A DNA stretch of 64,000 nt from the NCBI GenBank assembly GCA_030704615.1, contig CM060731.1, positions 5,828,001 through 5,892,000 of the forward strand, given 5' to 3'. Origin of the DNA: Takakia lepidozioides. Lineage: Eukaryota > Plantae > Bryophyta. Shown here in pieces: positions 1-64,000 of the stretch. The notes under the pieces were generated by a model. The model made no database searches and was not told the DNA's origin. It worked only from the letters and a program-made list of their open reading frames with translations. Positions within the stretch are counted from its first letter, which is position 1, and each line of letters opens with the position of its first letter. Made by a program: the position numbers and the translations under genes.

Positions 1-619
1 ATTGAATGTGAATGGAATAGAACTTTCAGTTTCCTTAGGGCTACATTGCACCTCCACCAGTGATCATAGCCTTCTGTATCAACCTCAGGTCATGTAATGG
101 TCACAAGGGGGTAGGTTAGAAAGCTCAGAGGTTTGCAGACCCTTCAGAGTAGTGCAGGTCGAGCCGTGGCCTCAAGATGCCCATGGACGGGTGAAGAATA
201 TTGGGAGTGGGATGGTTTTTTGACTGGTATATATATGTATATATACACCATGCAAGTCAATGGAGTGGGCTTTGGATCCCTACAAAAGGTTGTAACTTGT
301 CATACAACAGATCAGGATTGAGATTATGTGCGCCCTTCAGAGTATGCTAGCAGAATACAGAGAGTTGAGATTTCAGGGTTTGAGGCAGCTTATTAGCCTA
401 TTATTAGCCATCTTAGTTCCCCGGCAGGATAAATGTCCCATTAGTACATATTTTTTGAAAGCTCTCATTTTACAATAATTGGGACGGGCGCACACCCGAG
501 CTGACCAGTGGGCCCCGCGCGCTCTTCTTGTTTGGATGCTGCAATTGTAGGCCTCAACGCTCGTCTTGATTCTATTTAGGCAAGATTCCCTGCATTAATT
601 CCATGGTCATAGGACCATC

Positions 620-812
620 CACGGTTATAGGCGGCGCATGTTAATGCTGACGTGGCAGTTGACGGACAGTGCCACGTCATCATTTACCGCCACATCAGCA
701 TGCTGACATGACGCTCACGCCACGTCAGCGTGTGTGCAAGCTCACGCCACGTCAGCTGGCGTGAGCGTACGCTCGCGCGCTCACGTGCAACGCTCACGCC
801 ATTGCGTCGTTG
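620..812 (+). mobile_element. Right end of a hAT-like DNA transposon, with a subterminal TGACGTGGC/GCCACGTCA array and a GGCGTGAGCG..CGCTCACGCC hairpin
   Basis: Repeated TGACGTGGC motifs in both orientations. Ends ...GCGTCGTTG at 812, directly abutting Gypsy RNase H codons (HFRCYLYG). Same architecture as the end at 13130-13256. Confidence 0.55.
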
Positions 813-2630
813 CACTTCAGGTGCTATCTATACGGCAACCTCTTCACCCTTGTCACGGATCACCAACCACTCAAGTGGTTGATGGAGTCAGACAAGCTTA
901 CATGAAAGCTTGCACGGTGGGCACTCATACTCCAGGAATATGACTTTCAGGTGGTACATCGACCTGGTCTAGTCAATCGGGATGCGGATGGGTTGAGTCG
1001 CAATCCATGCACGAGCCAGTAGGATGACACTGGAGCTCGGTGGCATAGTGAGACGGACAAGGAGATGGTGCCTGGATGGCATGCATCTGCATTTCTGTGT
1101 ATCTAGGCAGCGAAAGGCCAAGTTGGACGTGCAACAAGGATGACTGTAGATTGAGTGTCTGAGGACCCTGAGGCCAGCAATGAGCAAGGTGGCGCCAAAG
1201 ATATACATGAGGATTCAGCTGTGTTGGACTACCTCCGCACTGGAGACACGGCAGCCACTGTGACTGCCAAGGAGAGGGATCGGATCCTACAACGAGCCAA
1301 GAGGTTCAAGTGGGAGGGGACACACCTGCTTCGAGTGTGGGAGGATGGTCGAGTGAGGATTGTGCCTCACCCAACACAACGGGCACGGTTAGTGCGGCAT
1401 GCCCAAGAGGAGTTGGGGCATTTTGGGGTGCGACGCACTCATAGTCTATTGCAGGGGCAGTATTGGTGGCGTGGTATGCACACAGAGGTGCAACAATTTG
1501 TGGCTAGGTGCATGGTGTGTGACAGGGTGCGTGCTTCATTCAATGCCCCTACTCCACAATTGCATCCTCTTCCGAACATGGGATTGGGCTACAGGTGGAG
1601 TCTTGACTTTGCAGGGCCGTTGCCATTGACCATGCGCCACAAGAGTACGTGTTGGTGATGGTGGAGCACTTTTCCAAGTGGATCGAGTTGGTTCCATTGC
1701 CTGATAAGGCTAGTGAGGAAGCTGCGTATGCATTCTTGGATTGTGTACTTAGCCGATTCGGTGCTCCAGCTGAGATACTCACGGACCAAGGGAGAGAGTT
1801 CTTGGGGGAGTTTCAGGCGTTGTGTGACAAGGCCTTGGTAGACCACCGCAACACTTCTTGGGATCATCCTGAGGCCGATGGCTTGGCAGAGAGGGTTGTT
1901 CAGACAGTGAAGAGGGGTTTGCGCAAGTATGGCTTGCAGAAGGGACACCTAGGAGATTGGGACCTTCAGTTACCTTGGTTAGCCATGGGCTACAGGTTCA
2001 ACAAGCAAGCATCACTTGCCTCCTTCTCACCATACTTTCTTCTCTTTGGCCGAGAGCCGGATTTGCCTGCATCCATTCTTAGAGAAGCTGCTTGACAATC
2101 CGGACATGTGGGCACGTGCATGTGATCAGCGTGCAAAGTTGTTCAAGAAAGTCATGCCCATGGCTTTCGAGAACCTTGCCATTGCACAACATTGTGATAC
2201 GTTGAGGTATGCTACCATACGTGGTGGGGGCTATCATCCTGGGGTTTGGAGATTTAACCCTGGTGACTATGTTTATCTGCAGCAGACTGCTCCTACAACC
2301 TTGGATGTGACTGCAGGACGTACTATTTTGAGGGTTCGAGAGGTGTTGCCCTCAGAAGTCCTGATCTTGGAGGGTCGGGATGACATGATTTGGAAGGACC
2401 ATGTGCGTAATTGCGCGCCATGTCACATTCCAAATGTTGATGGAAGGGTTGACCCAAACCTGACAGTGGTACCTGCAAGTTTGAGGTGCATGTTGTGTGG
2501 GTCTGCTAGAGGGGCAGCCACCATGCTGGTGTGTGATCGATGCTCTAGAGGTTGGCATATGGGATGTTTGACTCCACCTCTTGAGATGGTTCCTGATGGG
2601 GATTGGTTATGTCCGCATTGCATTGGATAG
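813..2630 (+). mobile_element. Degenerate Ty3/Gypsy LTR retrotransposon pol fragment: RNase H end, integrase (HHCC + DDE), C-terminal PHD finger
   Basis: TDHQPLKWL..LARWALILQEYDFQVVHRPG..DADGLSR (RNase H); H..LGHFG..C..C; WSLDFAGP, TDQGREF, ADGLAERV (DDE core); C4HC3 finger CMLC..CDRC..WHMGC..WLCPHC. Frameshifts and stops between ORFs 1155, 1649 and 2016. Confidence 0.9.
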
Positions 2631-2669
2631 TGGGAGTGGATACAACCATGGAAGGCTAACAAGAAATGC

Positions 2670-3130
2670 AAGGCCAAGCTACTAGGAGACCTTGAACACA
2701 CGAGATCCTGGCTCAAGTCACAGATTGCAAGACGGCGACTAACGATGGGGCTACTCTTGTACCCGGCCTCTTGGTCTATAGAGTTTGAGTACAATAGCCC
2801 GATCCGAAGACAATACGAACAGCATTGAAATTTGCTTGAGCACTATCCGCCATGAAACCTGCGAAATTTGGAGATGGCAGCCCATGACACGTATCAGGGA
2901 ATTCCACATGAGCTTCTGGGATTCCGTATCCTCGGATTGCATGTCACAAACTGCAATTGTCATAACTCGTTGGTACACTGGATCGTAGACATGACAAGCC
3001 ATTGTCGTCCAATCCTTCACTCATTTCACATGATCAAACATAAGAAAACAGTTCTGCAAGTCCCCAGTCTTCTGCATCCGCTTCACGAGGCTAACCCCAC
3101 TGCCCTCCCCAACAGACGATGAACGGTGTG
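2670..3130 (-). mobile_element. MULE-like transposase fragment (same family as 60505-63800)
   Basis: GSGVSLVKRMQKTGDL..MFDHVK*VKDWTTMACHVYDP..TIAVCDMQSED..FMADSAQANF parallels the motifs in the element at the window end. Confidence 0.75.
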
Positions 3131-3719
3131 CCAGAACATGAGAGGGCTGGCGGGGCTCTATAGCCACCATCGTGCATATGCTTTCACTATTTTCGCCTTC
3201 ATTTTGTGCTGACGTTCTTATTTTTTAGGACGGTATATGGAAAAATTGCATGCGTTTACGGTTTGTGGTGTGTGTCCGAGTCCGAGCTCCTTCGTATGGA
3301 GCAGGAAACCATTGGTAACACGATAGCGGAAATTGCGGAAGCATGTACAGGTGGAGGCGTGTATACATTGCAGAATTTATGTTCACCGATGAGACGGGGG
3401 GTTTTCGGGTCCTCCCAGTTCTGGGGAGGACGTCTCTGCCACCACATGTCTAGGAACTGCGGAGAGTGTAAACGGAACAGGATCCAATCCGAAGGTCCTC
3501 AAACATCCAGATGCACCTCCTGAAACATCACATCTCAACCACTACCGTCTCTTTGAAAACTGGACAATGGAAAAGGAAACGTAGCCTGAGAGATGTGGAT
3601 TCACGTTGCTTGTGGATATTCGAGGTCCTTGCGACTGCAAATGCGCGTGGATCAACAGGCTCTTCGACTGCGTCTTTGTCAGTACTTTCTCTAAGCAGTG
3701 TGTTGTGCCATGAGTATGG

Positions 3720-5240
3720 GCATATGCAAGTCTGCTGGACGGATGAAATGCAACCACGGCATGACGGCGACGCCAAGCATGGTTCTGATGGGATATCAGT
3801 CTGGTCTGCTGGACTATTGGTCTGTAAGGATACAAGTCTGGTGTGGCGCAAGTCTGTTCATCACTGGACTGCTAGGCCGTCACTGCCTGCCGAATTCCGA
3901 AGTGTCTTCTCTTGTCTTATCCCCGAAGTCTCTTCTCTCGTCAGTCTGTTGAACCGCTGGAAGTCCGTCTCTTCGGATATGAGTCCGTTTAACTACTACC
4001 TTTTAATTATCCGCATTGTCGTGAGTCTGCTGAGCCGTCGGACTGCTGGTCTGTACGCAAACCACTAAAGTTTTTCATGTATCACCACAAAAGTAATACC
4101 AATCACTGATGTATATGTAATCAGTCACACGTAACCACTGGCCGAGTGGTTCCAGTTACTAAATGGTTTGTAACCACTCATTCTACACCACTCTCAAAGT
4201 GGTACCAATCAATGGGGGTCTTTAACCACTCCAGATCTACGTATACTGTCCCCGTCCACGTGGAATAATATAGTTCATAATTAAAATATATTTTGAAACG
4301 ATAAATCTTAAATAAAAATTGAATTATTACACGTGGAGTAGCAAGTGGTTTCAATCACCTCCCATCACTCGGGTGTCTTCAACCACTCACAACCCACCGC
4401 AGAAGTGGTACCAATCACTCACATGTATGTAACCACTCACAAGTGCCTACTTGAAGAGTGGTTCCAGTTACAAAAGGGTCTTAACCACTCACATTCCACC
4501 ACTGTGCAAGTGGTACCAATCACTGGGGGGTCTTTAACCACTCCAGATCTACGTATACTATCCTTGTCCACGTGGAATAATATATTTTGAAATGATAAAA
4601 ATCTTTAAAAAAAAATTATTACACGTGGAGTAGAAAGTGGTTTCAACCACTTCCCATCACCGAGGTGTCTTTAACCACTCATAATTTATCACTGTACCCG
4701 TCCATGTCGGATATTATCATTATTAATATAAATATTTGACCAAATGTCGAATAATAAATATAAAATTAAATATTACATGTGGATTACTCAGTGGTTGAAA
4801 CCACTTCCAACCACTCCATATGATGCCACCGTGGCAATTCATCAGAATTAACCACTGGCCAGTGGTTACCATTACTTGGAGTGATTTATAGAGTGGTAAA
4901 AGACAAGAGTGGTTAAGGGGGCCAGTGGTTATTCCGCGTTTTTCTTCTAGTGTGCGACCTCACTCTGGTCCACTGGCTGGCGAGTCCGCCGGAGGGGACT
5001 GTTCGGAAGTCTGCTGGCAACCCAGTCCGCTCAGGATGCACTTTGGCCAAGTCCGTTGCAAGACTCACTTACGTAAGTCCGCTACGAGGTCAGCGTGGTC
5101 AGGTCTGCTGGCGGTGTCGTGAGGGCAACACTCATGGCAGGTCAGAGTGGGCGAGTCTATTGCCTGAATCCGTTTGGAACAGACGGGCAGACCAACCAGA
5201 GAGTCTACTGGGTTAGTGCCCAAGTCCACCGGCGAAGTCC
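3720..5240. repeat. AGTC(T/C)G-rich repeat tract, probably a transposon subterminal region, split by the AACCACT element
   Basis: Dense agtctg/agtccg/ggtctg motifs at 3720-4055 and again at 4953-5240. Confidence 0.4.
4062..4952. mobile_element. Non-autonomous or truncated CACTA element with AACCACT/AGTGGTT subterminal repeats and a ~310-bp internal tandem duplication
   Basis: Ends ...TTTTTCTTCTAGTG (reverse complement CACTAGAAG) at 4952. Many AACCACT motifs in both orientations. 4092-4403 resembles 4404-4690. No matching 3-bp TSD found. Confidence 0.7.
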
Positions 5241-5243
5241 TCT

Positions 5244-5780
5244 TTGAAGTCTCTCATGTGGGCATATGTACTTTGCAGGGCTGTTTTTCGAGGAGTGCTC
5301 ATTTTCCTGTGCTTTTGGCATGTCCGGCGGGCTTGGGTGAAGCAATCATGCGCGAAAACCAAAGATCCTATCACTGCCGCAAACTTGCTGAAAGATATGG
5401 GAGACCTCATGTATTGTAGAGGTGGACCAAGCAATCCCAAAGAAGGTCTTGCATGGGTAGTAACAATGCTCCAACGCATGAGAAAGAAATATCCAAATGG
5501 GCATGAATTTCTGGACTACATCGCTAAGGAATGGCGTCCTAAAATAACAATGTGGTGTACAGCAGCTCGCCATGTTCCGCATGCCAGTCAAGACACCAAC
5601 GCTAGCATTGAGGCATACCATGGAAACTTGAAGGCAAGACTGAGGATGAGGAAAGGCAAAATGATTGGGCGTAGAGTGGATTGGCTCATATGGGAACTCA
5701 CAGGCCGTGTGCTAACACACTACTGGTATGCAATTCAACTGAAAACGCACAGATTCATAAGGAATGACAAACAGGCCGGG
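5244..5780 (+). mobile_element. MULE transposase fragment (CxxH and catalytic E region)
   Basis: FLCFWHVRRAW, DTNASIEAYHGNLK, RRVDWLIWEL. Truncated at ~5780 by CACTA sequence on the opposite strand. Confidence 0.8.
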
Positions 5781-5784
5781 CACG

Positions 5785-7660
5785 TCCACTTTATCGTCCG
5801 TGCCCGCATGGACCTCCTTCCATCGGTCCTCCCAAAACTGCCCGGACGGTGTCATAGCGGGGGGGGCGGGGGGGGGACGTACTTCCTCTTTGCCATCAAA
5901 CAAGTGTTTCTCTGTTCTTCTCCATCGATGGCTCATAGGAAGAAATTTGCGGTAGTTGGGATACACCATCTTGTGAAGATGGCGGGAGCTATGTGCATCA
6001 AGAATATCGCCACAATGCAAGCATGCATGGTACCCTTTGGTGCTTAGCCCCGAGCAAACAGTTAGTCATGTACTACACATCCCGCCACATTAGCAAAAAC
6101 AAAAGGTTGTCATGTGCATGGCCCATAATGCCATCTACCCCACTACGGTGCACAAAACTGTCACCGCTACTTCAATCAATCCCAATTTTCATCGATATTA
6201 TCCGGCATTGACAAGTGAATGTACACGGGTTGTTCATGGGGAACATAATATACCTGGATAATCATGCATTGTCCAAAGCAAGATGTCTCCCATCTTTGTC
6301 CGGCCATAGGGTCAAGTGAAGCATCCAATGCAGGGACCCCCCCTCCATAGCTCTTTAAGTTCATCAACAAGAGGTCGCAAGTACATGTCCATGTTTGCCA
6401 CTTGTTTTTTCCCTATAAGACATTCACATCATTGTTTCAATGCTCCACCAATATGCAGATTATACTACAAAATGAATTACACGTCTTACTCCATGATTAT
6501 GTCACTCATCAATCTTGCATCCGAATTGCGTCAAAGATCAGAAGTTTAATGTAAAGTCGAAGGCAATAATAAACATGAATGAGTACACTCACCTGGGGAT
6601 GTTGTAATTCACCATGGTCACCGGCCAAGTGGAATGACTACATGACTGGACAGAGAATGGGTTGACCCCATCCGATGAGAAGCCGAGGTAGACATGTCGT
6701 GGGTCCTCCAAGAGAAAAGGCCACATCTCTTCAATATGCCTCCATGCTTGTGAATCTTGTGGCCCGCACACCTCTCCCGAGGGGCTCCGATGCGAGGCGT
6801 GCCATCTCATGAGTCTGGCCAATTCAGGGCTTCGGTACTGTGAGCTCAATCGCGGGATGATCGGAAAGTAATGCATTTTCTAGAATAAAATATCTCACGC
6901 CCCCCACATGACCAAACGTCGCTCCTTCCACTCCTCACTCACTCCTTCCAAAACCACAATCAGATCTTGCATGAGTACTACTCTCTAAACTCTAAACTTT
7001 GTGGAATACACTTTACATACATTGAGAAGATTAAAGAAAATAATCTCCATGCGAGGGGGAATGACGCTTATACCTTGCGTGGTACTTTTTTCCCTTGGAC
7101 ATCATCCCGATATCGGTCTTTCTTGCACTTTGGGCACTTGGTGAGATGCGAATCCTCTCCGTAGTATAGGGTTTTAGCACATGGACATGCATGAAAAATC
7201 TTATAGCCCATCCCCACAGAGTCCAAGACTTCGCGCGCCTCTTTCCGCGACCGTGGCATCTTGGGTTTCAAGTGTGGAATATAGTCTGCAATAGTTCGCA
7301 TTATGACAGACATCCCAACATTACTTACGCCAAATCGAATTGAAGATTGAGCAAAAGTAATATTGTTGAAAGTCGACTCACTTTCGCCCCTTCGTACAAG
7401 GGAGTTCTCGCCTCCCTCTCCATGTCATTTGAGGGGGCCATTTCAGGATCATCAATTGGCCGGGTTCCCGCTTCATAGGAAGCATCAGCGCCCACATGAT
7501 GCATTAAGAGATCCTCCATGGCTTGCACATCCTCCTGGTTAATTCCATGCTCATTGTTGTTGTCACTGTCACTATCACTATCATCGTCATCATCGTCTGG
7601 TACCGTGGGGGCGGCGTCTCGCCCACGGCTCCCGCCTGATGTACTTGGGGTTGTTTTCGG
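5785..7660 (-). pseudogene. CACTA Tnp2/TnpD (Transposase_21-type) transposase, multi-exon and degenerate
   Basis: TPLYEGAKVSRLSTILLLL; KIFHACPC..LY..CPKC; YFPIIPRL..MRWH..DSQAW..LGFSSDGVNPF..STWPV..YNIP; NMDMYLRPLVDELKELW..WTMHDYP; KGYHACLHC..YRKFLP..FDGKEE. Confidence 0.9.
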
Positions 7661-8608
7661 ATGGGGTGCCAAGAGAAAAGACCGGGAATGGATGGACAAA
7701 GTCCTAATACGAACAAATGAACATAGAGACATATATTATAATTTGTCCTTGCAACCATACACTTCATTATAAGCGAAATGCAAACAACAACCTTCAATAT
7801 GTGTGTGCATCAAATATGTCATTCAATAATTACATGTATGTGCGCAACGTACTCGCATGCAAAGTTTCAAACCCAAACAAAATCATTTGCCTCCCCAATG
7901 ACGCATCACCCTATCAACCAATTTTTGTTTATTAATGTGAAAGAAAATCCTCTCATGCCATTGCACCCAACAAACGGATGTGGCTCAAGGTTCATTTTTC
8001 CTACATGTGCTTAAATATGTGTGCAACACCTGTACAAAGATCCAGCAGGGAAAAAAAAAAAAAAAAATTTGCCTCCCCAACGACGCACTCACCCTTGCAC
8101 CAATTTTGAATTAAATCGAATTTAAATGAATTTAGAATAAATATTTGCAACTAGAAAATATATGATTGTGGTTTTGAGGGGCGTAATGATTTTCTTTTTA
8201 GCTCTATTTTGATCTGTGACATCGGGATTTGCACCACTACATCCATGCAAAAACTGGGACAAAAAAAAATGGAAAAAAAAAAAAGTGTATTTCTAGGGTC
8301 ACTTTTGCCAAACTCTCTATGAAGAGTGCATGAAGTTGAAGATAACTTAACTTTGGAGTGCAAATGAGAGAACAAAATCTGGTTATGGGTCCAAATGACT
8401 TTTGTTTACTCCCAAATTTTGCACACATATTGCATATGCTATCATTAAGCATATGGCTTGAAAAATGGAATTAAAAAAAAAATCATTTGTAGGCGAAACA
8501 CAATTTTCCGTCTCTATGACACGTAGCTGCGTTCAATACTAGAGCAACAATAATTTTTTTTACATCAATCGATTAATCGGATGTATACAAAGTACATCAT
8601 GAGAATAT

Positions 8609-9274
8609 CTACAATGCCCTTCTACACGATCCCTGTTTCAAAGGAACCCTATTTCTATCATACACATCCCACTCACGCTGTAATCGGAGGTCCCAATCAT
8701 CCCGAGAGAACTCGTATGATGCAAATAGTTCGCTGCCAGCCCTAATAGTCCTACTAGCACATATCATCACAAACATGTGCATCCCCTCACAGTATACTGA
8801 TGTATGACCACAAAAGCTCTCATGCCCATCGCTTCGCTCGTCCCATACTATATTGGTTCTCCTAGGATGACCAAAAGAACTATTGACCAGCCCAGCAACA
8901 TTGTCGAAGATGTCGGGGTCACCATCACAAAATCTGATCTCAATGGGAGACAACCCCCGTCTACGTACATCCTGTCCGTTGACAAACAAAATGTAGGGTA
9001 CGATGTATGGGGCTTCGAGGCGTAATGTACGGAACTCCGCGGAGGTGTAGTATGTACCGTAGTAGGGAAACAAGTTCACCATGCTGTTTCTCCGAGGAGG
9101 AACCACAATATCATTGACCGTGAATAAACCCCGACCCATAGCAGGGTCTGTAGCGGCTCTCACAACATACCGTCTCCCCCAATACTCGAACTCCACATTT
9201 TCTCGGATGGGGGTGGGAGGGTCGAGATGATTCCCCCAACAACGAGGCTGGACGGTCCTCCGTAACATAGTCAT
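8609..9274 (-). CDS. Stand-alone SET-domain protein (putative lysine methyltransferase), cargo of the CACTA element
   Basis: SET motifs in order: MGRGLF (GxG), PYYG (YxG), NVAGLVNSS..N (RFINHS equivalent), IRAGSELFASY (ELxxxY). The frame stays open ~70 Pro/Arg-rich codons upstream, to ~9481. Confidence 0.8.
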   Translation of the reverse strand: MTMLRRTVQPRCWGNHLDPPTPIRENVEFEYWGRRYVVRAATDPAMGRGLFTVNDIVVPPRRNSMVNLFPYYGTYYTSAEFRTLRLEAPYIVPYILFVNGQDVRRRGLSPIEIRFCDGDPDIFDNVAGLVNSSFGHPRRTNIVWDERSDGHESFCGHTSVYCEGMHMFVMICASRTIRAGSELFASYEFSRDDWDLRLQREWDVYDRNRVPLKQGSCRRAL

Positions 9275-9704
9275 ATGCGCTTCCCATCGGGGGCGAGGAT
9301 CCGGCTCAGGCCGCCCAAGCCGAAGGGGAGGAAACCTAGGGCGAAGCCGACCCCTCCTAGGGGTTCGGGGAGCACATGCACGTGGAGATGGAGGTGGTAC
9401 TGCTGGCGGAAGAGATGAAAGTGGAGGTGGTTGAGGATGTAATGTTGGAGGTGCAGCCGACGGTCGTGAGGCTCGCCCCGTCTATATCCTCTCCGGGGCT
9501 CTGAATCTGGGCAATCAATATGGGATAATCGAACCTCAATCATATTGCGCCACGTAGCGGCGAGAATCCGCCACACCTGCTTTTAACGCCAGTGAACGGC
9601 CGCATTGGCCGACTCTGTCCTGTGCGCGGCCATAGGGCTCGCCCAAAGGCCGCTTACGGCCAAACACAGGGCAGAATCGGCCAAACACGGCCTGTTCTCT
9701 AGTA

Positions 9705-9894
9705 CAAATCAGACCCCTTAATTGTAGTGAGAGGAACCTCTTTCACAGTAACCGCGCCATGGAGGCTGAGAAATGGGACACCCCCTAGGGAAGGGGGAGA
9801 AGAGGATACCACACCCGTCAAGTAGCAGGATTTGACCCAGAGTCATATGGGTGGCACTCAGTGCACTATCCAACTGAGCTACTGACTGTTGGTG
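9705..9894 (-). mobile_element. tRNA-derived SINE, copy 1 (tail interrupted by the CACTA end)
   Basis: Minus-strand A box TAGCTCAGTTGG (9870-9881) and B box GGGTCAAATCC (9828-9838). Similar copy at 30964-31237. Confidence 0.75.
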
Positions 9895-10338
9895 ACCCTT
9901 TCAAATCAGTTTCTCCGTTTTGCTATTTTTTATTTTATTTATTTTTTGCCTTTTTTTTTGGTGCTTTCCGGGAGGGTTCCTTACTCGAGTTTATGATTTC
10001 CATCCTTTGATTTTGTTTCATTTGAGGAATAATTAGGCTTGATTAGGAGTGTATTCACAAATCCAAAGTGAATGTCGTTGACGACATTCACTTCTATGTC
10101 TGTGTCATTCCAAAACGATAGTTTGCATTCACGTGGATTAGGGTGTATTTATAGTATCATTGAATGGAATGTTTTGAATGGCGTTGACGACATTCACATC
10201 TGGAGCAGTCGTGTGGTCCTGAAAGGTCCTTGGAGCAGTTCTCAGAGCCATTTCATTCTATGTTTTTTTCATTCTGTTCTACTTGCATCTTACTCACTGA
10301 GCGCTTTGGTGAGTTGGGATTTATCTCCTTTTTTTCAG

Positions 10339-12544
10339 GTACACGAAATATGTGCTTATGGAAGGAAATCACCTGAGCGGAATTCCAGACTATCTTGACA
10401 TGTGGTCGGACCCTGCAAACAATCCAACCATGTATACTGCAGGGATATTGAAGGACTGGAGTCCTTCTCACTTCAGAGACTGTGGGTGGTACCTTGACTG
10501 CCCACCGGAGCACACGACCTTTCAAGAACAGCATATGAAATACTTGAACAATAACGCTGAGATGTTGGCGCCTTTGACTGACGAAGAGTACCAACGAAAC
10601 ATAGCAACATTGGCTGCCAATGAGCCTGATGCTCAGGGAACGCCACAGAAGGGAAAGAATGCGGGCCGCAAACCAAAAGACAAGGCTGTTGATGTCATAG
10701 CCATCTCACCAGCAAAGCCAAAGGACAAAGACAAGTCCAAAGAGAAGGAAAAGGACAAGGGGAAGGAGAAAGAAAAGGAGATGGAGAGTGGGCAGGACTT
10801 TACTGCTGGAAGATATACCCGCACTGCGTGTTCGATGCCAAGCCACACCCTTCCCGTTCTGATTCGGCAGGAGAGATGAAAATTGTTAATGAGGGTTGGC
10901 TGTCGATGATGCAGAGTCGAAAGAGAAGATACACTGGGGTGCCTTTGCCTACCTGGGACAATATAATCTCATTCCTCAATCTGGTGAGAATTCCAGTTTC
11001 TTTAATATCTCTCTGACAGTTTCGTTGGCAGTATTTCAGTCTCGTTCTTTGAAAACATTCTTGCCATCATTCTTATAAAAAACATGTCTGTTGCAGGTGA
11101 GCACAGGTCCCACCTTCGTGTGCGGTGTGCAGAAAACATATGCGGCCGACATTGTCATTCTCGACATCCTGGATGGCCAGGCTGTGCCAGAAGTTCTTCC
11201 AAAGGGCAAGACGCCAGGCTGGAACAAATTCGAGGACAACTACCGGAGTTGGGTGTTCGGGTTCTGTAATAACTTCCTCTCTGATGCAGGGACACTTCTG
11301 CTTTTTCAGTCATGTGACAATGATAGTCGTCGGGCATTGGCATCATACCTCAAGTCTTCAGGGTTTGAAGTTTTGCGCACATGGAATTGTGTGAACAGCC
11401 TCTACCTTGTGAAAGGGGGTTTCCCTGGTCAGCTGGTATGTCGTCTCCCTTCTGCTTGTGCTTTCATGATGAGTTTCAATGTTCTCTGTAGCTCCACTCT
11501 AGTAGAATCTGTTATGATCGACACCGATCATCACCGATTCGTGATAAAAATGATTTTTTTGTGTCTGAGTTCTGAATAGCCGATGTATACACTTCCACTA
11601 TAGATTGTGTTTACCACACTAACCTGCTATCTTTGGCAGACGAGGATATTCGAGGTGATCTGCCTGCACAGGATTCGCACCTCCAAGACACCATCCTCCA
11701 TCCACAGCTTTGAGATTTCTGACCAGGGTTGTTTCGTCAACCCCCCCTATGAGCCCCATGTCAATGACATTTTGTACAACTTCATGCAGTCCAGTCAGAC
11801 TCTGAAGAGACCAGATGGCACTCCCTGGAGAGGTGCAAAGGAAAAGTCCCCAGCGTTCATGCAAATACTGCTGGAGTCATGCAGCCACCACTCTGCACGG
11901 GTGGTCGATCTTTCTGTGTCCACAGGTTCGTTCTTTCCCTTCCGAATTGGTTTTCTTTCAACAGTTTCATCTGCTTAAATCCCCCCCACCAAACTGTTCA
12001 TGTCCTCCTGTGTGGTGCAGGAGCAACTTACCATGCATGCAAGGCAGGCGGAAGAAGCCTTTTTGGCATGGAGGGTGATTCTGACCTCTACAACACAATG
12101 CTCCTCCCCCTTTTGTCTGGCTCCACTTCAGGCACACAGACTGATCGGATTCAAATTCGAAATGATGACGATCCTGAAGATAAGCAGGTCGACAACGACT
12201 TTTCATGTGAGTAAGTGCTAAACCCTCTTTGGGAGCCATACTCAATTTCTCAATAACATCAAAGTTACAGTAATAACTTTTTCAGGCTGTCTTTCAGGAA
12301 AGGCAGCGGTGGATCTTCAGGAGATACAGTCATTTCTGGCGAGTCTGTTTTCGACAGCCCCCTTTCCAATTTTCTGCTTCATATTTATACCGAAGCAATG
12401 ACACTTCACGCGGCCGAGTCCCTATCCCCTGACTTTTTACTGCCCAGCCATAGGTATATCCAGCGTGGATCTGGTGTTCTAAAATACTTAGAGTTAGATG
12501 CAGAGGAAGCGGGGATACATTGTACTGACTCTGAGTCAAACTGA
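10339..12544 (+). CDS. Intron-containing beta-class N6-adenine/N4-cytosine DNA methyltransferase-like gene (5'-truncated, two apparent frameshifts in homopolymer-like runs)
   Basis: Exons 10339-10983, 11097-11435, 11640-11925, 12021-12206 and 12286-12544, joined by phase-consistent GT-AG introns. Spliced product shows ADIVILDILDG (motif IV position), FLSDAGTLLLF, and WRGAKEKSPAFMQILLESCS..RVVDLSVSTGATYHACKAGGRSLFGMEGD (motif X-I-II pattern of N6_N4_Mtase). Confidence 0.7.
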
Positions 12545-12689
12545 ACTATATTTTTTTAATATTCATTTTCATACTATCTGGAAAACGTTGAATCCCCTTC
12601 CTCCACCGTAGTTGTTCCTTTAGAACAAATAATAATCACAGAATCAACTTTCATTTAAATTGCAATATGTATGAATCCATTTCACAAAC

Positions 12690-13256
12690 CTCTCTGATTC
12701 TTCTCATATTCATTGTGCATTCATCTACAGTGTATTCATGCGTGCTCCATTCATGAATGTTTTCCTTTGTTCAACATCCATTGTACATTCATCCTCTGTA
12801 CTCTTTAATCCACCCCACAAACCTTCCACACTCATTTCATATACGTTGTGCATTCGTCAAAAGTTTTGGTCATGCATCTTCCTGTCATGAATTTTTGTCA
12901 TTGCTCAACATCCATTATACATTCATCCATTTTACTCTTATCCATCCCTCATTCATCCATCTACATTCATTTTTCACACTCATCCATCTGTTTATCATCC
13001 AACTGTACATTCATCCAACTGTACATTCATCCATCCTTTATTCAATGCCTTTTATTATGTCGTCCAGCTTGTTTCCGCGGTAAAGGGTGCCAATCCGCGG
13101 GAATACACTCCACTTCTTTCGGCGCGTGGTGACGCGGCCTTCACGTGTGATGACGTGGAGTGAGCCCCGTGACGTGGCATTGGCGCAAGGTGACGTGGCG
13201 TGAGCGCAGTTGCGCTCACGCGCTCACGTAACCAGGCTCACGCCGAGGCATCCCTG
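12690..13256 (+). mobile_element. Right end of the hAT-like element that carries the MTase gene
   Basis: CATTCATCC-rich repeats at 12700-13040, TGACGTGG array, GGCGTGAGCG..GCTCACGCC hairpin, and terminal GGCATCCCTG (reverse complement CAGGGATGCC, Ac/hAT-like). Confidence 0.6.
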
Positions 13257-15198: not shown

Positions 15199-15427
15199 AT
15201 TTTGCAATTTTTTTCTTTTCCTTAAGGATGGAAGTCGGGACAACAATTCCATAAGCCCAGTGTCCAGAGGGAGAGAGAGGGAGAGAGAGGGAGTGAGAGG
15301 GAGACATCAGGGGGCAACAAAGAAAAGAAAAGAAGGTGGGGGGGGGAATGACTGAGAAGCTGCTGCTGCTCAGTCACCCCCCCCCCCCCCCCCACATTCT
15401 CTGTTTTTCTTTGTTGCCCTCTCTCTT

Positions 15428-15901
15428 GGGGAAACAAAAGGGACAGATCCTACCTCTGTTAGGGGCTGACGTTGGTAGTAAGACTTACCTTCACATATAG
15501 AATTAATCCGGGTTTTCCAGATATCCTCTACAAATCCCTTCACACAAGCATCAATCTGCTGTGTGTGAGTTGCCCAAAAACTAGGCCTCAGAAGGGGCTG
15601 GGCTTTTGGCTCAGCCTCGACTTTTTCAAAGTTAGTAAACAGAAGTACATGCACAATTCCCTTGATAGATTTGAAGAGAGCGTCTCTTTGGTGAGAGAAC
15701 CCTGGACAGTGTATCAAAAAATGAATAATGTCTTCAGGTTGCCCACAGACATGGTTGGACACTACAGCCTCTAAGTTTGATAGGTCGGTGGGCGGTCCTG
15801 TTTCCAAGATATAGAGTCGATTAACTTAAGATATCTGGTGTTGGACATATGTTGCAGCTGAACCCACCATCTGACCTTGAATTTATCTCGTCGGGAGCTT
15901 A
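15428..15901 (-). mobile_element. Internally deleted copy of the LINE found at 21281-23766
   Basis: Reverse-complement blocks match ~21856-21963, ~22057-22095 and ~22305-22620. Adjacent to a GA/CT-rich tract. Confidence 0.85.
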
Positions 15902-20200: not shown

Positions 20201-23200
20201 TGAGGCTTTTGGGAATTATTTGGAGTAGTTAAGAGGTGTTGGTTGGTTATGTTTTGATATTTAAACTGAGGCCACTATGTGTGTTGAGTCTGAGAGTGGG
20301 CAGAAGACAGATGAATTAGGTTCATCTGTGCTCAACTCTTTGTGACATCCTCTCTTTTGTTCATCTCCCCTGTATGCTCAGTTCATTTTGTCCTATGAGG
20401 GTTTTCCTGTCAGCTAACAGTTAGCTTTGTCGCATTCACCATTTTGTACATCAGGATGCATCTCTTTGTAGTGTGGTCCTTTCCAGGAAACTAGTTCTGA
20501 TTGAAATCTAAAGGCGTCTGTCTATGCAGCAAAGTGAAGACCTTTATGATCAGAAACCGGCAGAGCTTCCGCCAGAGGTGGTGGTACCATCTGCAGGGGT
20601 AGCTGTGCAGGCTGCCCCACGGACGTCACGGTTTGTGTACACTGATGACTTGGTCGTGGCCAATGGTGGCAGCAGCTCCACAACTGGTCATGTGGCAGCA
20701 CCCTCAACTGCTGGGGATTTTTTTGCTGAGTTTGGATCCATCTCTGGGGATCGCAGACTTAATGCCAACAGCCGTGCAAAGTCCCAGGTAGGACTTCACT
20801 TATTTTCAAGTGATTCCTGCTGGGTAGGGGTAATGGAGGAGTGAAGGGTACTCTTAAGAGGTTGAGTTCCTATTCAGTCTCGTGGTGCTCCAGGTTTGTG
20901 GCTCTTTTTTGATGGGGATTGTGTCTTGTTTATGAACTCAATTCGTGGAGTCCATTGTGTCCTGTGAATATTCTAGATATTGCGATATCGAACTACATAG
21001 GTCACAACATTGTTTGTCCAAGTTTTTAATGGAGTTATAAGTGGGATTGGCAGACTGAAGAGAGCAGTGAGGCCCAAAGGAAGTTTGCAAATGCCAAATC
21101 CATATCTTCTGCTCAGTTTTTTGGTGATCAGAATAAAAGTGGTGACACTGAAAATCATACACGCCTACAAAAGTTTGCTGTAAGACACTTAACTTACGTA
21201 TTTCTACCTCTCGGCTTGTTCTGGCTTTGTTTTAGTTGATGTTGTTTCCCTTGCTCTTTCAATCTCTCTCTCTCCTCATAGGTAGGTTCAGAGGTAGGTT
21301 CTGTCCCTTTTGTTCCCGCTCAAACTGGGCGCGGGGTCAATGGCCACAAGGCTACGGCAAACAACGTCTTATGAGTACAATCTCTCTCCTCATACTGCGC
21401 GAAGAGATACTTTGATCTTTGGGGGCTAGAGGCTAATGTCAGCAAATGTGCAGTGGTAGCATTCAACGACAGAGGAGAGGGAGGAAGTGATCTTAAGTGG
21501 CAGTGGGGTAGCCAAGAGATCCCAGTCCTCCCTTCCTACACTTACCTGGGCGTTGAGTTCTCCTCCAATTGTAATTGGGATGCACATATCCGGAAAGTTG
21601 TTCAAACTGGCAAGGGCAAAGCTCTGGGGCTCACTAAATTTTTCCACTGCAGAGGGGTCAACTCTGAGGTTAAGAAAACCATGCTTTGTCGCGTTATTAG
21701 ACCTGCCTTGGAGTACGGATCTGCTATATGGGTTGATAACTCCAACCAGGCTAAGTCTCTAGAATCCATTCAAGTGGGGGTGCTTAAGGAGTGTATGTCA
21801 GCATGCTCCAAAACAGCCAATGTGGCTGTTTGGGGTGAGTTTTGCGTTCCGTCCTTAAGCTCCCGACGAGATGAATTCAAGGTCAGATGGTGGGGTCAGC
21901 TGCAACATGTGCCCAACACCAGATATCCTAAGTTAATCGACTCTATATCTTGGAAACAGGACTGCCCTGTCAAACAGGCTAAGTCCTGGCAGAAGAGAGT
22001 AGAAGAGATCCTTAAGGACCTGGACCTGGATCCGCAAGTCTTGACCCTGCTGGATAAATCTGACTTAGAGGCTGTAGTGTCCTCAGCCATGTCTGTTGCC
22101 ATGAGATTGTCTGATGAAAATGAAGTTAGGCAGAAAACTTCCCTGAACTTGTTTCCAGTCTGTGACATGGGGGAGGACATCTTGGATGACCTCAAGGGTC
22201 TACCCACTCTCGGCACTAGACTGAAATTTAAACTCAGGGCAGGAAGCCTACCTTTGAACAGCAAACAGAAGCAGAGAGGAAAGGGAGAGTGCAATTGCCC
22301 GTTGTGTGGGCAATCTGAAGACAGTATTCATTTTCTGATACACTGTCCGGGGTTCTCTCACCAAAGAGACGCTCTCTTCAAATCTATTAAGGGAATTGAG
22401 CCTGTACCCCTGTTTACCAACTTTGAAAGTCTCGAGGCTGAGCCAAAAGCCCAGGCCCTCCTGAGGCCTAGTTTTTGGACAAATCACACACAGCAGATTG
22501 ATGCTTGTGTGAAGGGATTTCTAGAGGATATCTGGAAAACCCGGATTAATTCTTTATATGGAGGTAAGTCTTACTACCAACGTCAGCCCCTGACAGAGGT
22601 AGGTTCTGTCCCTTTTGTTCCCGCTCAAACTGGGCGCGGGGTCAATGGCCACAAGGCTACGGCAAACAACGTCTTATGAGTACAATCTCTCCTCATACTT
22701 CAAACTGGGCGCGGGGTCAATGGCCACAAGGCTACGGCAAACAATGTCTTATGAGTACAAATGTCTCCTCATACTAATGAAGTTAGGCAGAAAACTTCCC
22801 TGAACTTGTTTCCAGTCTGTGACATGGGGGAGGACATCATGGATGGCCTCATGGGTCTACACTCCTCGGAGTAGACTGAAATTTAAAGTCAGGGTGGGAA
22901 GCCTACCTTTGAACAGCAAACAGAAGCAGAGAGGAAAGGGAGAGTGCAATTGCCTGTAGTGTGGGCAACCTGAAGACAATATTCATTTTCTGACTCATTG
23001 TCCAGGGTTCTCTCACCAGAGAGATGCTCTCTTCAAATCTATCAAGGGAATTGTGCCTGTACCTCTGTCTACCAACTATGAAGTACTCGAGGCTGAGCCA
23101 AAAGCCCAGGCCCTTTGGGTCCTAGTTATTTGACAAAATCACACACAGCAGGTTGATGCTTGTGTGAAGGGATTTCTAGAGGATATCTGGAAAACCCGGA

Positions 23201-25097
23201 TCAATTGTTTATTCCAAGGTAAGTCTTACCAGAGGCGTCAGCCCCTGACAAAGGTAGGTTCTGTACCTCAAGGGTCTACCCACTCTCGGCACTAGACTGA
23301 AATTTAAACTCAGGGCAGGAAGCCTACCTTTGAACAGCAAACAGAAGCAGAGAGGAAAGGGAGAGTGCAATTGCCCGTTGTGTGGGCAATCTGAAGACAG
23401 TATTCATTTTCTGATACACTGTCCGGGGTTCTCTCACCAAAGAGACGCTCTCTTCAAATCTATTAAGGGAATTGTGCCTGTACCCCTGTTTACCAACTTT
23501 GAAAGTCTCGAGGCTGAGCCAAAAGCCCAGGCCCTCCTGAGGCCTAGTTTTTGGGCAAATCACACACAGCAGATTGATGCTTGTGTGAAGGGATTTCTAG
23601 AGGATATCTGGAAAACCCGGATTAATTCTTTATATGGAGGTAAGTCTTACTACCAACGTCAGCCCCTGACAGAGGTAGGTTCTGTCCCTTTTGTTCCCGC
23701 TCAAACTGGGCGCGGGGTCAATGGCCACAAGGCTACGGCAAACAACGTCTTATGAGTACAATCTCTAGGGCAAGATTTGCAGAGTTTAAATTGGATGATG
23801 GTTCCTTACTAACTGTTGCTCAAGGAAAGGCAACTGAAAACACTCATGCTCAAACCAATCGATTGACATATTACTTTCCCTAGTACATTTGAAGGATGCT
23901 CAGGAGGTACTGATCTCCTTGGCTTAGACATGTTAATGAAATGGCGTTGTTATGATGCACTTTAAATCTTATAGGATGAGGATTTGACTTTCAATCAATG
24001 TGAAATATAGCTTTGATTTTAGATTGCAATAAGGAGTAAATAAGAATTCCTCATGACATTGCGGTGTTTGTTTTTGTAGAACTCATCATCCATCTCAAGT
24101 GCTGACTTTTTTGACCGTGAAGAGGGAGCGTCAAATGGATCTGCTATTGATCTTACTGCAAGTGAGATCATGTCGAAGCTGTCAATGCAGGTAATTGTGC
24201 CCAAAGCTTGTCCATGTAGGGTCAGCAGGTTGCAAGCTGTTGTGCTGGCATGGGTTCTTAATTGGGCTTTGCTTGGTAATGTCTCACCCCATTCCATGAA
24301 ACAAACATTTCAGCAACATTATCCTTGGGTGTTTAGATTTGTTTGTTGTACTTCTCTCAAAATCATGCCAACTGGATGTACTAGGGTTCTTTCTTCCTAC
24401 ACAACCATTTAGTATGAAATTGAGAAAGTTTAGGGATGAGACAAAATGTTATTTCATCAATTGTCAAGTACACCATGGCATGTCACAATTCTTTGTCAGT
24501 GCCATAGCCTCCTGTTGCAGCACTGATGCAGTAATGGTATTATTCAAGCAGCTGCATGCAGCACTACTTTTTCTCAGCTGTAGGTATTTGTTTGGACTTC
24601 TTGTCAGAGAACCTGGAGAGTGCTATCTAATCATCTGACAAGCCTTTTCACAAATGACCTGTCCGTGCTAGCTGTAGGTTTCCTTCTAATGCTCCTTATA
24701 TTTGGGATGTCTTTTCACGTCCATATTCTTTTTGATGACTCCACATTTGCTTGTGGAGTGTCATTTGACATTCTTAAGAAGCCTAGTGTGATGCACCTCT
24801 GCTCTCACTTGGCCTCCTCCCTTCTGTCGTGCTCGTTTTTTCCACACTCCACTGATAGACTTGGTTGTAATGTCTGACTAATCTGACAGTCCTGTGTCCA
24901 ATATCTGTCTGGTGTTTTAACGAACCCCATGGCTTCAGATAGAATCTGGAAGTTTGTAGAGCAAGGCTGATGGATCGGATGGTGGCCAGGCCTCACAGGA
25001 TATGTCAACACTGAAAACCATCGCTGGACAAACTGGGAAGAAGCTGACATCTATTGCCTCCAGTCTGATTGCAGATCTGCAGGATCGTATTAGATAA
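17278..25097 (+). CDS. AGD8/AGD9/AGD10: Glo3-type ADP-ribosylation factor GTPase-activating protein (AGD8/9/10 family), 7 exons
   Basis: Exons 17278-17346, 19171-19289, 19716-20136, 20530-20787, 21054-21179, 24080-24190, 24990-25097. Zinc finger [34 protein letters not shown], two ISS Glo3 motifs, C-terminal ..LQDRIR*. Confidence 0.95.
21281..23766 (+). mobile_element. Head-to-tail concatemer of five 5'-truncated non-LTR retrotransposon (LINE) pieces in ArfGAP intron 5
   Basis: RT C-terminus ([16 protein letters not shown]) and CCHC finger CPLC..HFLIHC. Pieces at ~21281-21395, 21396-22698, 22699-22774, 22775-23264 (diverged) and 23265-23766; all but the fourth end in TTATGAGTACAA.. Confidence 0.9.
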
Positions 25098-30963: not shown

Positions 30964-31237
30964 AAAGGGAAACACCTGGGAGTGACAGCTCACAAATCAG
31001 GCCCCTTAATTTTTTTTTTAAATTTTTAAAGGGAAACACCTGGGAGCGCCCTTAATTATAGTGAGAGGAGAAAATAACCTCTTTCACAGTAACCGCGCCA
31101 TGGAGGCGTATAAGTGGGACACCGCCTAGGGAAGGGGGAGAAGAGAATACCACACCCGTCAAGTAGCAAGATTTGACCCCAGAATCATCTGGGTGTTAGT
31201 CAGTGCAATTAACCAACTGAGCCACTGACTGTTGGTG
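30964..31237 (-). mobile_element. tRNA-derived SINE, copy 2, with duplicated 3' tail and T-rich end
   Basis: Homologous to 9705-9894, with A and B boxes. AAAGGGAAACACCTGGGAG occurs twice (~30964 and ~31028). Confidence 0.75.
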
Positions 31238-35747: not shown

Positions 35748-37170
35748 TGAAGGTGACACATCACAGAGCAAGTTGGTTTGTAACACATGCTGTAAATGCA
35801 AGTGACTGTACAAGTTCGACTGCAGGTCCTAGTCAGTCAGATGACAAGACTCGTGTCACAGAACAAGCAAGGGAGGAGCAGATGTCTCCTCATGAACATG
35901 TTTCACGTACAATAATGGATCTGCAGACCTGCAATCCCTCTTTCCGTAGATTTGTCAGGACATAACTCAATGCCCAACTATGGCTGGCAAGAGTCTAGGC
36001 AGACTCATTGGAGGCAGAAACTTGGATGCACCGGAGATACTCTCAATGAAATGGCTGCAGGTGCGGAGGGCGGTCTACTGTGTAGTACTCAGTGTGCCCA
36101 CACTTGTGGGGAGCACATGGAGACTCTTGAGCCGGTCGGCTCTCTTAAGCAGGCAAGCCCTGGACTTTTGCAGTGTAACCAAAGCTCCTATCCTCTAAAG
36201 TCACTGTTAGACAGGAATGAAGGGAGTCTGGGAAGTTTATGGTGGTCGGTCTTGTGTGAGCAGATTATGGAGCAGACACACTGCAGTCCAGTAGCGGTGA
36301 CGTTGCACGCAGACATCTCACCCTGCACTGCCGATTCCATATACTTCCCTGCCTCTTTCTTACTCTATGGGTGGAGAGTAGCACTCATGTGGGGCTGGCT
36401 CGGCGAACAGGTGGAAGTGTCACATCATTCTTCTCCCTTGGAGGGCACTGGCAAGGAGGGTGGAAGGAGCAGCAGCTCAAACAATGCACCCAGCCACACG
36501 AATGGATTGAGAAAGTTGTCCCTCAGTGCTCGGCCCTGTTCTACATCACAGGCTGAAAAATGATAACCCCAGTTATGCTCAGGGTATAGACGAACATGAT
36601 TGCGAGGAGATTAAGAGGCGGGACGAATATGTGGAAGCACCTTGTGATACTACAGAAGTGGCAGTTGTCACAAGCTCAGATGAAAAAGGGAGTGAGGAGC
36701 GACGGTAGCGTGGTGTGAGTGGGGAGGCCGGCACCAGTCAGTTCACGTGCTGAGAGTCCTGCTGTCGAGTCTCCAGTCCCATGCCTCACCAGAACGTGGT
36801 GCCTCTCTTCTCTTTACTTAAATCCCCATATATGCAATGTTGCTTGAACTCTGAACTTAGCACTGGCCAGATGTAGGGGTGCACTGGGGCTTGGGCCGGT
36901 AGCAATATGGATATCATGTTACAAGTTGAGAGGCGCGTAATATGAATTTCATATAGTCGTTGTGGGATGTGTCTAAGGTACTATCTTCTTTGTGTGTCTT
37001 GACCACTATCCCGCATTCCAAGAGAGGCAAGAAATTATGGATGAATTCCACACGTGCAATGTGCTTCAGTGCTACTGCTTTGCAATCAAATGTAAATGAT
37101 GTGGTGGATGTTGGGCCTTCCAACACCGCAGGCGTACATCAGGACTGCAATGACAGAGCAGATTCGGGCC
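35748..37170 (+). pseudogene. Degenerate genomic duplicate of exons 3-5 and introns of the PZP gene (source ~46149-47785)
   Basis: Direct nucleotide similarity including intron sequence, with multiple deletions and stops. Confidence 0.92.
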
Positions 37171-37174
37171 AGAG

Positions 37175-56670: not shown

Positions 56671-56715
56671 AAGTAATGTTCCTCATGTCCATTTCAATGT
56701 GTACCCCTGTAGAAA

Positions 56716-57171
56716 ATGCAAAGAGTCGAGGATGACACTCCAACATTGCAAGAAGTGGAGACAACCAAGGCTCCGGATGAAAAGATCCCTGATGTGGACG
56801 ATGAATTATATGAAAGCAAGGCGTCGCAAATGCTGGGGAACCAGAAGGTGAATTCGCAACTTGTGGTGCAAAGTATGCTTGCACCTAGTGGGAGGTGGAT
56901 GATTCCACTTTGCAGGATGATTTCCATGCCCGTTGTTCGTCCACCGCTCATTAAGGACATCCAGAAGCTGGAGGCAGATTTTGTTCATGGATACTTGGAT
57001 GGATCCGCTGTTTTTTATGTTTCAACCACGGATTCCAAAGGCAAGGAGACTCTTGTGGATGAGTCCGTGATCGAGTCATGGGATCCCATAGCCTGGCAGG
57101 TGAATAAATCTTTCGAACTACTTTTGTTGAGAAAACTGACGACGCAAGCATTCTTTGGCAAGATGTTATAG
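56716..57171 (+). pseudogene. Truncated ORF resembling the N-terminal part of a ParB/Srx-fold domain
   Basis: IPLCRMISMPVVRPP..DIQKLEADFVHGY....FYV pattern (ParB: I.l..i.....R......v..L..s....G). Cut off at GKML, before an expected DGxHR motif. Confidence 0.45.
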
Positions 57172-63800: not shown

Positions 63801-64000
63801 GACCTCAATGCACCCATCTTCCTCGTCGGAATGTCGAATACGTCCACACGAGAACTATGGAGGGTCTTGACGGTCCAGGTCGGGAATGATTATCGTTGCA
63901 TACCTCTCTGTTGGTAGTGGCCGCCTGTCGGTTTCCGGACTCCTTTGCGGATGGTGTGGGCAGCGACTGATTCGGAAAGGGAATAGGCATTCCCACACTC

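Follow-up and report, generated by a model that had tools for sequence, protein, structure and literature searches.

What is a spliced gene with the motifs of a prokaryote-type amino-methyltransferase doing in the genome of a moss, and what brought it there? The question arises from a 64,000-nucleotide stretch of the Takakia lepidozioides genome (GenBank assembly GCA_030704615.1, contig CM060731.1, positions 5,828,001 to 5,892,000, forward strand), hereafter the window, in which an earlier note, made from the letters alone, had described such a gene as part of a DNA transposon at 10339-13256. We found that the feature is real and that it adds a variant to a type of transposon cargo that was named only recently, with algal examples from 2025. 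The copy in the window is non-functional: it is a 5'-truncated piece that comprises the rear two-thirds of an accessory gene and carries one frameshift. Its intact relatives lie in Mutator elements and, by analogy with known systems, the intact gene probably helps the transposon to recognise its own DNA and avoid silencing.

Structure of the window gene

The gene runs on the forward strand from 10339 to 12544 as five exons and four GT-AG introns, phase-consistent throughout, as had been claimed; the splice sites of the closest relative, locus L010, fall at matching protein positions. In the joined frame, the exons from 11097 to 12544 comprise 353 codons plus a stop, with zero internal stops. 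The first surviving exon (10339..10983), preceded by a phase 2 intron acceptor ending at 10338, holds a conserved block, a Lys/Asp-rich linker and one frameshift, and is 43% identical to L010 over 75 amino acids. A phase 0 intron (10984..11096), with an L010 intron at the equal position, leads to an exon (11097..11435) encoding the motif IV strand and loop (Asp at 11163), a P-x-W-N motif and motifs V-VII, which is 41% identical to L010 and 30-33% identical to relatives in Ceratodon purpureus.

A second phase 0 intron (11436..11639), whose position is conserved in relatives, precedes the exon at 11640..11925, which holds the motif VIII strand, motif X in the form WRG-x-x-EK-S-P and the S-adenosylmethionine (SAM)-binding motif I (Asp at 11907). 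A phmmer search with 11640-11924 as the query matched 29 proteins at E<=0.001, including hypothetical proteins of C. purpureus. The phase 1 intron that follows (11926..12020) splits the Gly codon closing motif I, at a position shared by L010 and Ceratodon. Motifs II-III, with the acidic residue of G-M-E-G-D, and an acidic tail are encoded at 12021..12210 (42-45% identity to L010). The last intron (12211..12297, phase 2) opens at 12211 with a GTAAGT donor identical to that of L010, and the last exon (12298..12544), which ends with TGA at 12542-12544, is 32% identical to L010 over 47 amino acids and weakly matches the Ceratodon C-terminus.

Two frameshifts had been proposed, near 10775 and 12360. 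The first is real in the assembly: in the exon at 10339-10983, relatives align with the 5' frame, which runs to a stop at 10877, and L010 aligns (E 4e-6) with the 3' frame, which is open from 10693. The shift thus lies between 10693 and 10877, with a purine run near 10775 as its simplest site. The second is unneeded, as it arises only when the donor is placed at 12207, creating a stop where the exons join, and is gone with the donor at 12211, so that the last exon reads through without a frameshift. All the protein motifs quoted in the earlier note were found in the window sequence. Part of the stretch was present in ten public sequencing runs from six studies, none of them recorded as RNA. 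Bacterial contamination was ruled out by the introns in the gene and the plant genes nearby.

A beta-class amino-methyltransferase fold

In the window gene and its relatives alike, motif IV comes before motifs X-I-II. When the window exons were searched singly, we obtained no Pfam and no PHROG match, so the domain call for the window gene comes through its relatives; a homologous-protein search with the motif IV exon likewise returned no match. The relatives scored 12-18 bits against Pfam PF01555 (best 18.3), below the gathering threshold of 26.7, and matched the PHROG DNA methyltransferase profile (E 2.5e-5) and the PADLOC type II methyltransferase profile (E 4e-5). The top phage tblastn rows were nearly all annotated as DNA methylases, with best E-values of 3e-3 to 5e-2. 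Sequence searches of the PDB gave weak matches only (E 0.25-0.6), to M1.HpyAVI and N4CMT, and a further PDB search with another family alignment gave none.

Structure comparison was carried out with a model of the domain from a Ceratodon member (mean predicted local distance difference test score, pLDDT, of 51; 60-90 in the N-terminal half). Its first structural matches by Foldseek were CcrM, M1.HpyAVI and M.BceJIV (E 3e-5 to 8e-4), and in the Atlas 10/10 rows were PF01555, with template modelling scores of 0.54-0.61. Full-length alignment was obtained to beta-class enzymes only, including M.MboIIA (Z 7.7, root-mean-square deviation 3.8, 154 residues); tRNA methyltransferases scored slightly higher on the first half alone. 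Among the checks that the earlier note had proposed, the PF01555 profile left the window exons blank and the relatives under threshold, and the comparison with M.MboIIA supported the assignment. The modelled fold is that of a beta-class amino-methyltransferase, and together with the motif order it bears out the description of a DNA transposon family with an intron-containing, prokaryote-type amino-methyltransferase gene.

Relatives are cargo of mobile Mutator elements

We identified four relative genes on four Ceratodon chromosomes (L001, L002, L004 and L005). Two of these copies are 98-99.8% identical over about 15 kb, and the ends of all four fall on one base, with GCTCAC followed by 15 nucleotides to CCC, in unrelated flanks. 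L003, L019 and L020, too, are dispersed copies that end sharply in unrelated sequence. The Ceratodon element is a young mobile element, and the single-copy host gene that the earlier note had named as the case against its claim is not what we found.

Intact relatives lie in elements of 13-15 kb with one layout: a Mutator-like element (MULE) transposase on the minus strand, a palindrome array, the ParB-like/methyltransferase gene on the plus strand and an end built of GCTCAC repeats. The accessory gene is transcribed away from the transposase, and the palindromes lie between the two. Unrelated plant-derived contigs showed the matching layout (L006/L018/L019 and L007/L009), and L010, L011 and L015 showed the gene part. 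L010 is 39-45% identical to the window gene per exon (32% in the last exon) and shares its intron positions. A transposase was visible in five relatives and was of the MULE type in 5/5. In Ceratodon, the transposase has a GCM-like finger, a D/D/CxxH/E core and a weak C-terminal SWIM-like finger (E 0.2); its nearest Atlas clusters were PF10551 (0.95), with 10/10 concordant for the MULE clan, and Pfam alone returned no MULE match for it. The complete L019 measures about 13.4 kb and bears inverted subterminal repeats; its target duplication, seen in this one copy, reads as 8, 9 or 10 bp according to the register chosen. In L018/L019, inverted subterminal repeats are present at both ends, and the outermost 15 nucleotides of the left and right ends differ. 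A locus search with one family alignment found two metagenome loci.

Two further observations concern the Ceratodon element. Near its right end it also has an open reading frame with an RNase H1 N-terminal (Cauli_VI) domain (L001:14960-15433, E 9e-17), which was not detected in the window copy. A ParB-like exon lies upstream of the annotated Ceratodon protein start (L001:8196-9236), and the NCBI gene models are probably 5'-incomplete.

The N-terminal domain and the palindrome arrays

The intact gene encodes an N-terminal ParB/Srx-like domain, a middle region and the C-terminal methyltransferase fold. The earlier note had missed the N-terminal part and the palindrome array of the intact gene, both of which are absent from the window copy. 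Two motifs of the N-terminal domain, R-P...L...F and (E/D)GNHR, are conserved, and we take them to resemble those of ParB/Srx; the label "ParB-like" is motif-based and serves as a lead only. A search with the ParB-like alignment found no related loci in bacterial genomes or viral contigs. The palindromes number 5-9 per element against about 1 in shuffled sequence, and the arrays exceed shuffles in five elements. They hold CpG and TTAA/TGAC cores and differ between families.

An altered catalytic loop throughout the family

The family motif IV reads D-x-P-[E/D/S/K]-G-L-P, where phage enzymes have DLPYG in the same register. Among 22 aligned rows, which include near-duplicates, the fourth position was E in 11, D in 6, S in 3 and K in 2, and aromatic in 0. 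In N4CMT and CcrM, the Tyr of this motif forms a stack with the target base (PMC10406627). The first position is Asp in 19/22 rows and the Pro is kept in 19/22, and downstream lies a conserved P-x-W-N in which the Trp is invariant. Motif I reads D-x-[ST]-[AV]-[SG]-T-G, with Asp in 29/31 rows and the final Gly kept; the central Gly is present in 9/31 and is often replaced by Ser or Asn. The acidic residue of motif II (Glu) is kept in the family. The earlier note had reasoned that a consensus lacking SAM-binding and catalytic residues would mean an inactive protein; the alignment goes part of the way, in that the aromatic is gone family-wide (0/22) and the Asp and final Gly of motif I, the Glu of motif II and the Asp of motif IV are largely kept. 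With no catalytic aromatic in the 22 rows, methylation activity is unproven, and the alignment argues that the family should not be filed as active N4-methylcytosine (4mC) or N6-methyladenine (6mA) methyltransferases.

The window copy reads D-I-L-D-G-Q where the family has D-x-P-[E/D]-G-L, and so lacks the Pro as well. The earlier note had attributed DILD and DLSVSTG to CpG decay. For DLSVSTG the explanation fails, since the motif is within the family range, with V in 7/31 rows. For DILD, CCG>CTG could account for the change of Pro to Leu, but two conserved residues next to it differ as well, by transversions. The window gene has no nonsense codon in about 1700 coding bases, which puts neutral decay probably under about 5% and makes the three adjacent changes in the catalytic loop more likely subfamily traits than decay. 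The deeper anomaly of motif IV, the missing aromatic, is a family-wide feature.

Purifying selection and exchange of the accessory cassette

Among the Ceratodon copies, the ratio of nonsynonymous to synonymous divergence (dN/dS) was 0.04-0.10 for the methyltransferase exons, 0.07-0.10 for the N-terminal domain and 0.06-0.09 for the transposase. These values indicate purifying selection on the gene with the methyltransferase fold that is as strong as that on the transposase, and they point to a functional accessory cassette. In L001, L004 and L005, synonymous divergence (dS) of the accessory gene was 0.45-1.0, versus 0.06-0.12 for the transposase, and the palindrome cores of the three elements were slightly different. 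The contrast in dS is what one would expect of a cassette of gene and array that moves as a unit, and we conclude that this cassette is exchanged between elements.

What the intact gene may do

Taking these results together, the best explanation of the whole, to which we give about an even chance, is that the gene is an accessory gene of Mutator elements encoding a binder-type device for self-recognition and anti-silencing in seed-free land plants. The protein is predicted to bind the palindromes of its own element. Its methyltransferase fold would mostly bind SAM and DNA, and would transfer methyl groups in the classical way rarely or not at all. Host 5-methylcytosine (5mC) would be kept off the ends and the shared promoter region, allowing the element to be expressed and to move. 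The working mode would be like that of VANC of Arabidopsis VANDAL elements, although built from phage-type parts. VANC is not known to have ParB or methyltransferase folds.

Several results weigh against this binder-type device. The element bodies are CpG-depleted (observed/expected, O/E, 0.5-0.7), so that protection is at best local or transient. The N-terminal domain gave no hidden Markov model, PDB, fold or P1-ParB match, its structure model (pLDDT 48) being too poor to speak against ParB, so that its ParB identity is unconfirmed, and L007 is without a palindrome array. In the window, the transposase fragment at 2797-3137 appears tied to the gene by orientation and spacing only. Finally, catalysis could still be possible with the Asp conserved in motif IV and the invariant Trp that lies downstream.

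The last point bears on a different possibility, namely that the intact protein has a non-canonical but active loop and methylates DNA at N6 of adenine or N4 of cytosine; directed to the element that encodes it, it would leave a mark that blocks 5mC or licenses transposition. The frequent Asp and Pro of motif IV and the Asp of motif I would suit such an enzyme, the invariant P-x-W-N could provide an aromatic stack, selection on the gene is strong, the palindromes contain CpG and TTAA/TGAC cores, and a like proposal has been made for algal proteins (PMC12477816). However, the fourth position of motif IV is never aromatic and is variable, the central Gly of motif I is often Ser or Asn, the window subfamily has lost the Pro too, and inactive methyltransferase domains borne by transposons are known (DIRS1, PMC4738411). 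We consider an active enzyme a tentative possibility, perhaps true but improbable on present sequence evidence. More doubtful is the fullest form of the idea, an old, still mobile Mutator family of seed-free land plants with a phage-derived epigenetic device, in which a ParB-like clamp loading on element-specific palindromes and fused to an amino-methyltransferase with a new loop (D-x-P-E/D, no aromatic) would write 4mC/6mA or another mark and override host 5mC.

The protein might instead be a transposition helper that loads on the palindromes as ParB does on parS, and that either bridges the element ends or keeps hold of them, or else recruits the transposase in the manner of MURB, with the methyltransferase fold as a dimerisation and DNA-binding scaffold. 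Such a role would be consistent with the constant divergent pairing with the transposase, with the beta-class folds that dimerise (PMC10406627) and with the MURA-MURB precedent (PMC12973397), and the difference between the outermost 15 nucleotides of the left and right ends in L018/L019 suggests that synapsis may need help. By contrast, exchange of the accessory module among elements with near-identical transposases fits co-evolution of the protein with its target array better than it fits a fixed partnership between two proteins, and we judge a helper unlikely.

The element end and the identity of the carrier

Whatever the mechanism, the window copy could have had another carrier. The earlier note had seen a hAT-like terminus downstream of the gene. 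A terminus-like end is indeed present at 13160..13256, as is CAGGGATGCC, but its context does not support the hAT label. This end, the only one in the window for the window copy, is a cluster of GTGAGC/GCTCAC repeats of the family type, with a 24-bp palindrome at 13198-13221; its last base is 13254 (..CCC) or 13256 (..CCCTG). In Ceratodon and four other lineages, GCTCAC plus about 15 nucleotides closes the element. GGCGTGAGC occurs 6 times in the window versus 0.27 expected, always at 713-800 and 13197-13244. The CpG O/E of the end is 1.23 versus 0.48 window-wide (P 5e-5), which fits local protection and equally fits selection on binding sites. The window has only three GCTCAC-type clusters. 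One lies where it would be expected, past a second relic of a MULE transposase, which RTGAGC end repeats flank at 59764-59850.

The alternative is that the window copy was carried by a hAT element that had picked up the module, or is an orphan unlinked to the upstream MULE fragment. If the last base is 13256, the end reads CAGGGATG, which we take to resemble that of maize Ac; the single target duplication seen, in L019, could be 8 bp; and algal modules move between superfamilies (10.1101/2025.02.11.637652). On the other side, the GCTCAC repeats and their spacing are as in the MULE-bearing relatives, all five relatives with a visible transposase carry the GCM-finger/MULE/SWIM type, RTGAGC clusters flank a MULE relic, a MULE fragment sits where it is expected upstream of the gene, and a crude motif scan found no hAT transposase signature in the window. 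The carrier is thus most likely Mutator and not hAT, and the likeness of 13160-13256 to a hAT end is probably incidental. A hAT carrier or an orphan seems to us quite improbable; this alternative concerns the carrier only and can be combined with any of the mechanisms above.

Weakest of all, and already largely refuted, is the view that the gene was domesticated by the host or resembles a methyltransferase by chance. It has in its favour that the window exons alone match neither Pfam nor PHROG and that the splice sites and 353 codons are intact; the dispersed, near-identical, sharp-ended Ceratodon copies, the missing 5' exons of the window copy and the agreement of several independent searches on the fold make it very improbable.

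A further end of the GCTCAC-cluster type lies at 640-812; it is CpG-rich, oriented like the end at 13256 and abuts a gypsy RNase H region, and it probably belongs to a related element inserted into the gypsy element.

Comparison with known systems

Ectocarpus Sola1-1_Ec32 has a ParB-like plus N4C/N6A methyltransferase gene opposite its transposase (PMC12477816). It resembles the present family in being a large DNA transposon with an accessory gene on the opposite strand, in the combination of ParB-like and amino-methyltransferase domains and in the proposal of self-binding and self-modification. The family described here differs, in a comparison of architecture, in its land-plant host, its Mutator carrier, its several conserved introns and its lack of the motif IV aromatic. 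In the Plavaka elements of Bostrychia, PAG2 (PF01555 plus SET) and PAG3 (ParB plus 2-oxoglutarate oxygenase) have homologues in Chondrus Mutator elements (10.1101/2025.02.11.637652). These elements likewise bear an amino-methyltransferase and ParB-like domains beside tandem inverted-repeat arrays; unlike the present family, they have their ParB and methyltransferase domains on different genes, a PAG2 that scores above the PF01555 threshold and an EnSpm/Plavaka carrier. None of our named search hits was an Ectocarpus or Bostrychia protein. VANC proteins are the anti-silencing proteins of Arabidopsis VANDAL elements (PMC5735166), which are also Mutator-like and combine an accessory gene with repeat arrays that are specific to the family and differ among related elements; demethylation has been shown for VANC, whereas here it is suggested by analogy only.

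The beta-class prokaryotic enzymes (CcrM, M1.HpyAVI, M.BceJIV, M.MboIIA and gp19 of Cellulophaga phage phi17:2) share the fold, the IV...X-I-II order and the motif register. In the present family, by contrast, the Tyr of DLPY is replaced by Glu, Asp, Ser or Lys, and the genes are spliced, fused, transposon-borne and below the Pfam threshold. Bdelloid N4CMT (PMC8885841) and Marchantia MpDN4MT1a/b (10.1101/2021.02.12.428880) are also eukaryotic genes with a bacterial beta-class fold, and N4CMT is intronised too. Both belong to the host, keep SPPY intact and show evidence of 4mC activity, whereas here the gene is transposon cargo whose motif IV starts with Asp and has no Tyr. Kinship by motif with N4CMT or MpDN4MT1 was rejected, as the gene has no SPPY and is not a host gene. 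Iyer et al. listed eukaryotic methylases that are fused to ParB and helix-turn-helix domains or borne by transposons, including the inactive domains of DIRS1 (PMC4738411). We found no paper on the land-plant family in a literature search that left most subscription journals outside its reach.

Only a handful of systems (VANC, TnpA) show in detail how transposons evade silencing. In several seed-free plant lineages, Mutator elements carry a phage-type methyltransferase fold that strong selection has maintained and whose altered loop may have made a former writer into a binder. The near-identical copies of C. purpureus make the algal proposal of a self-binding, self-modifying protein testable in a laboratory moss. 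If the protein did write 4mC/6mA, this would be the first transposon-encoded DNA mark other than 5mC in land plants. Either outcome would be informative, yielding a new plant DNA mark or a sequence-specific anti-silencing scaffold usable for epigenome editing. The window copy itself is broken and adds little beyond its further-altered loop.

The window copy and its surroundings

The 5' exons of the gene were not detected in window positions 1-9900 by tblastx with L010 and L011; CACTA remains and a repeat resembling a short interspersed element (SINE) occupy the span expected for the palindrome array and these exons. Upstream, a fragment of a GCM-finger/MULE transposase on the minus strand (2797..3137), covering the region of the first and second catalytic Asp, was found by tblastn, with 58% and 80% identity to the Ceratodon element transposase (E 2e-37), one stop and one frameshift. 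It is oriented divergently from the gene, as in the relatives. Judging by this orientation and by the spacing, we somewhat favour an origin of the fragment and the gene in the same element.

The SINE-like repeat (9715..9894, minus strand) sits as an insertion within the intron that precedes the first surviving exon and has a second copy, 87% identical, at 31049-31237. Its tRNA-like head was read by eye, and ARAGORN found no tRNA in it. The CACTA-type debris (4100..9704, minus strand) was recognised from Pfam matches and ends, and includes Transposase_21 pieces, a SET-like open reading frame and ends at ~4927, 4952 and 9704. The Transposase_21 pieces, at 5715-7313, lie beside the SET-like frame (8609-9704), which is open for 221 codons (Pfam E 0.07), sits just inside a CACTA-type end and is reminiscent of the SET domain of red-algal Plavaka PAG2. 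Dense ACCACT/AGTGGT repeats at 4100-4952 run up to CACTG- and CACTA-type termini and are probably the end of a separate, non-autonomous CACTA element. At 5394-5800 (plus strand), a piece of a different MULE-like transposase overlaps the CACTA debris; its TNASIEAYH motif was read by eye and had no Pfam support. To the left, a gypsy element adjoins the transposase fragment at 2797-3137; this Ty3/gypsy fragment (815-2793) has a PHD finger (E 3e-11) at the end of its integrase and seems to have inserted into the MULE transposase.

Elsewhere in the window, a second relic of the same kind of element lies at 54100-57170. It has an array of GTGTGC-N6-GCACAC palindromes, 7 of them where shuffles give 1.15, and then a ParB-like exon (56875-57135; 55% identity to L010) that is cut off beside a pentatricopeptide repeat (PPR) gene. 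A decayed GCM-finger/MULE transposase lies on the minus strand at ~61655-63978, with the RTGAGC cluster at 59764-59850 as its likely end. Several copies of a 3' end like that of long interspersed elements, together with a partial duplication within the region of a PHD-finger gene, were seen at 15370-15900, 21289-23767, 35783-37045 and 46189-47659, and a long inverted-repeat element resembling a miniature inverted-repeat transposable element lies at 37169-38134.

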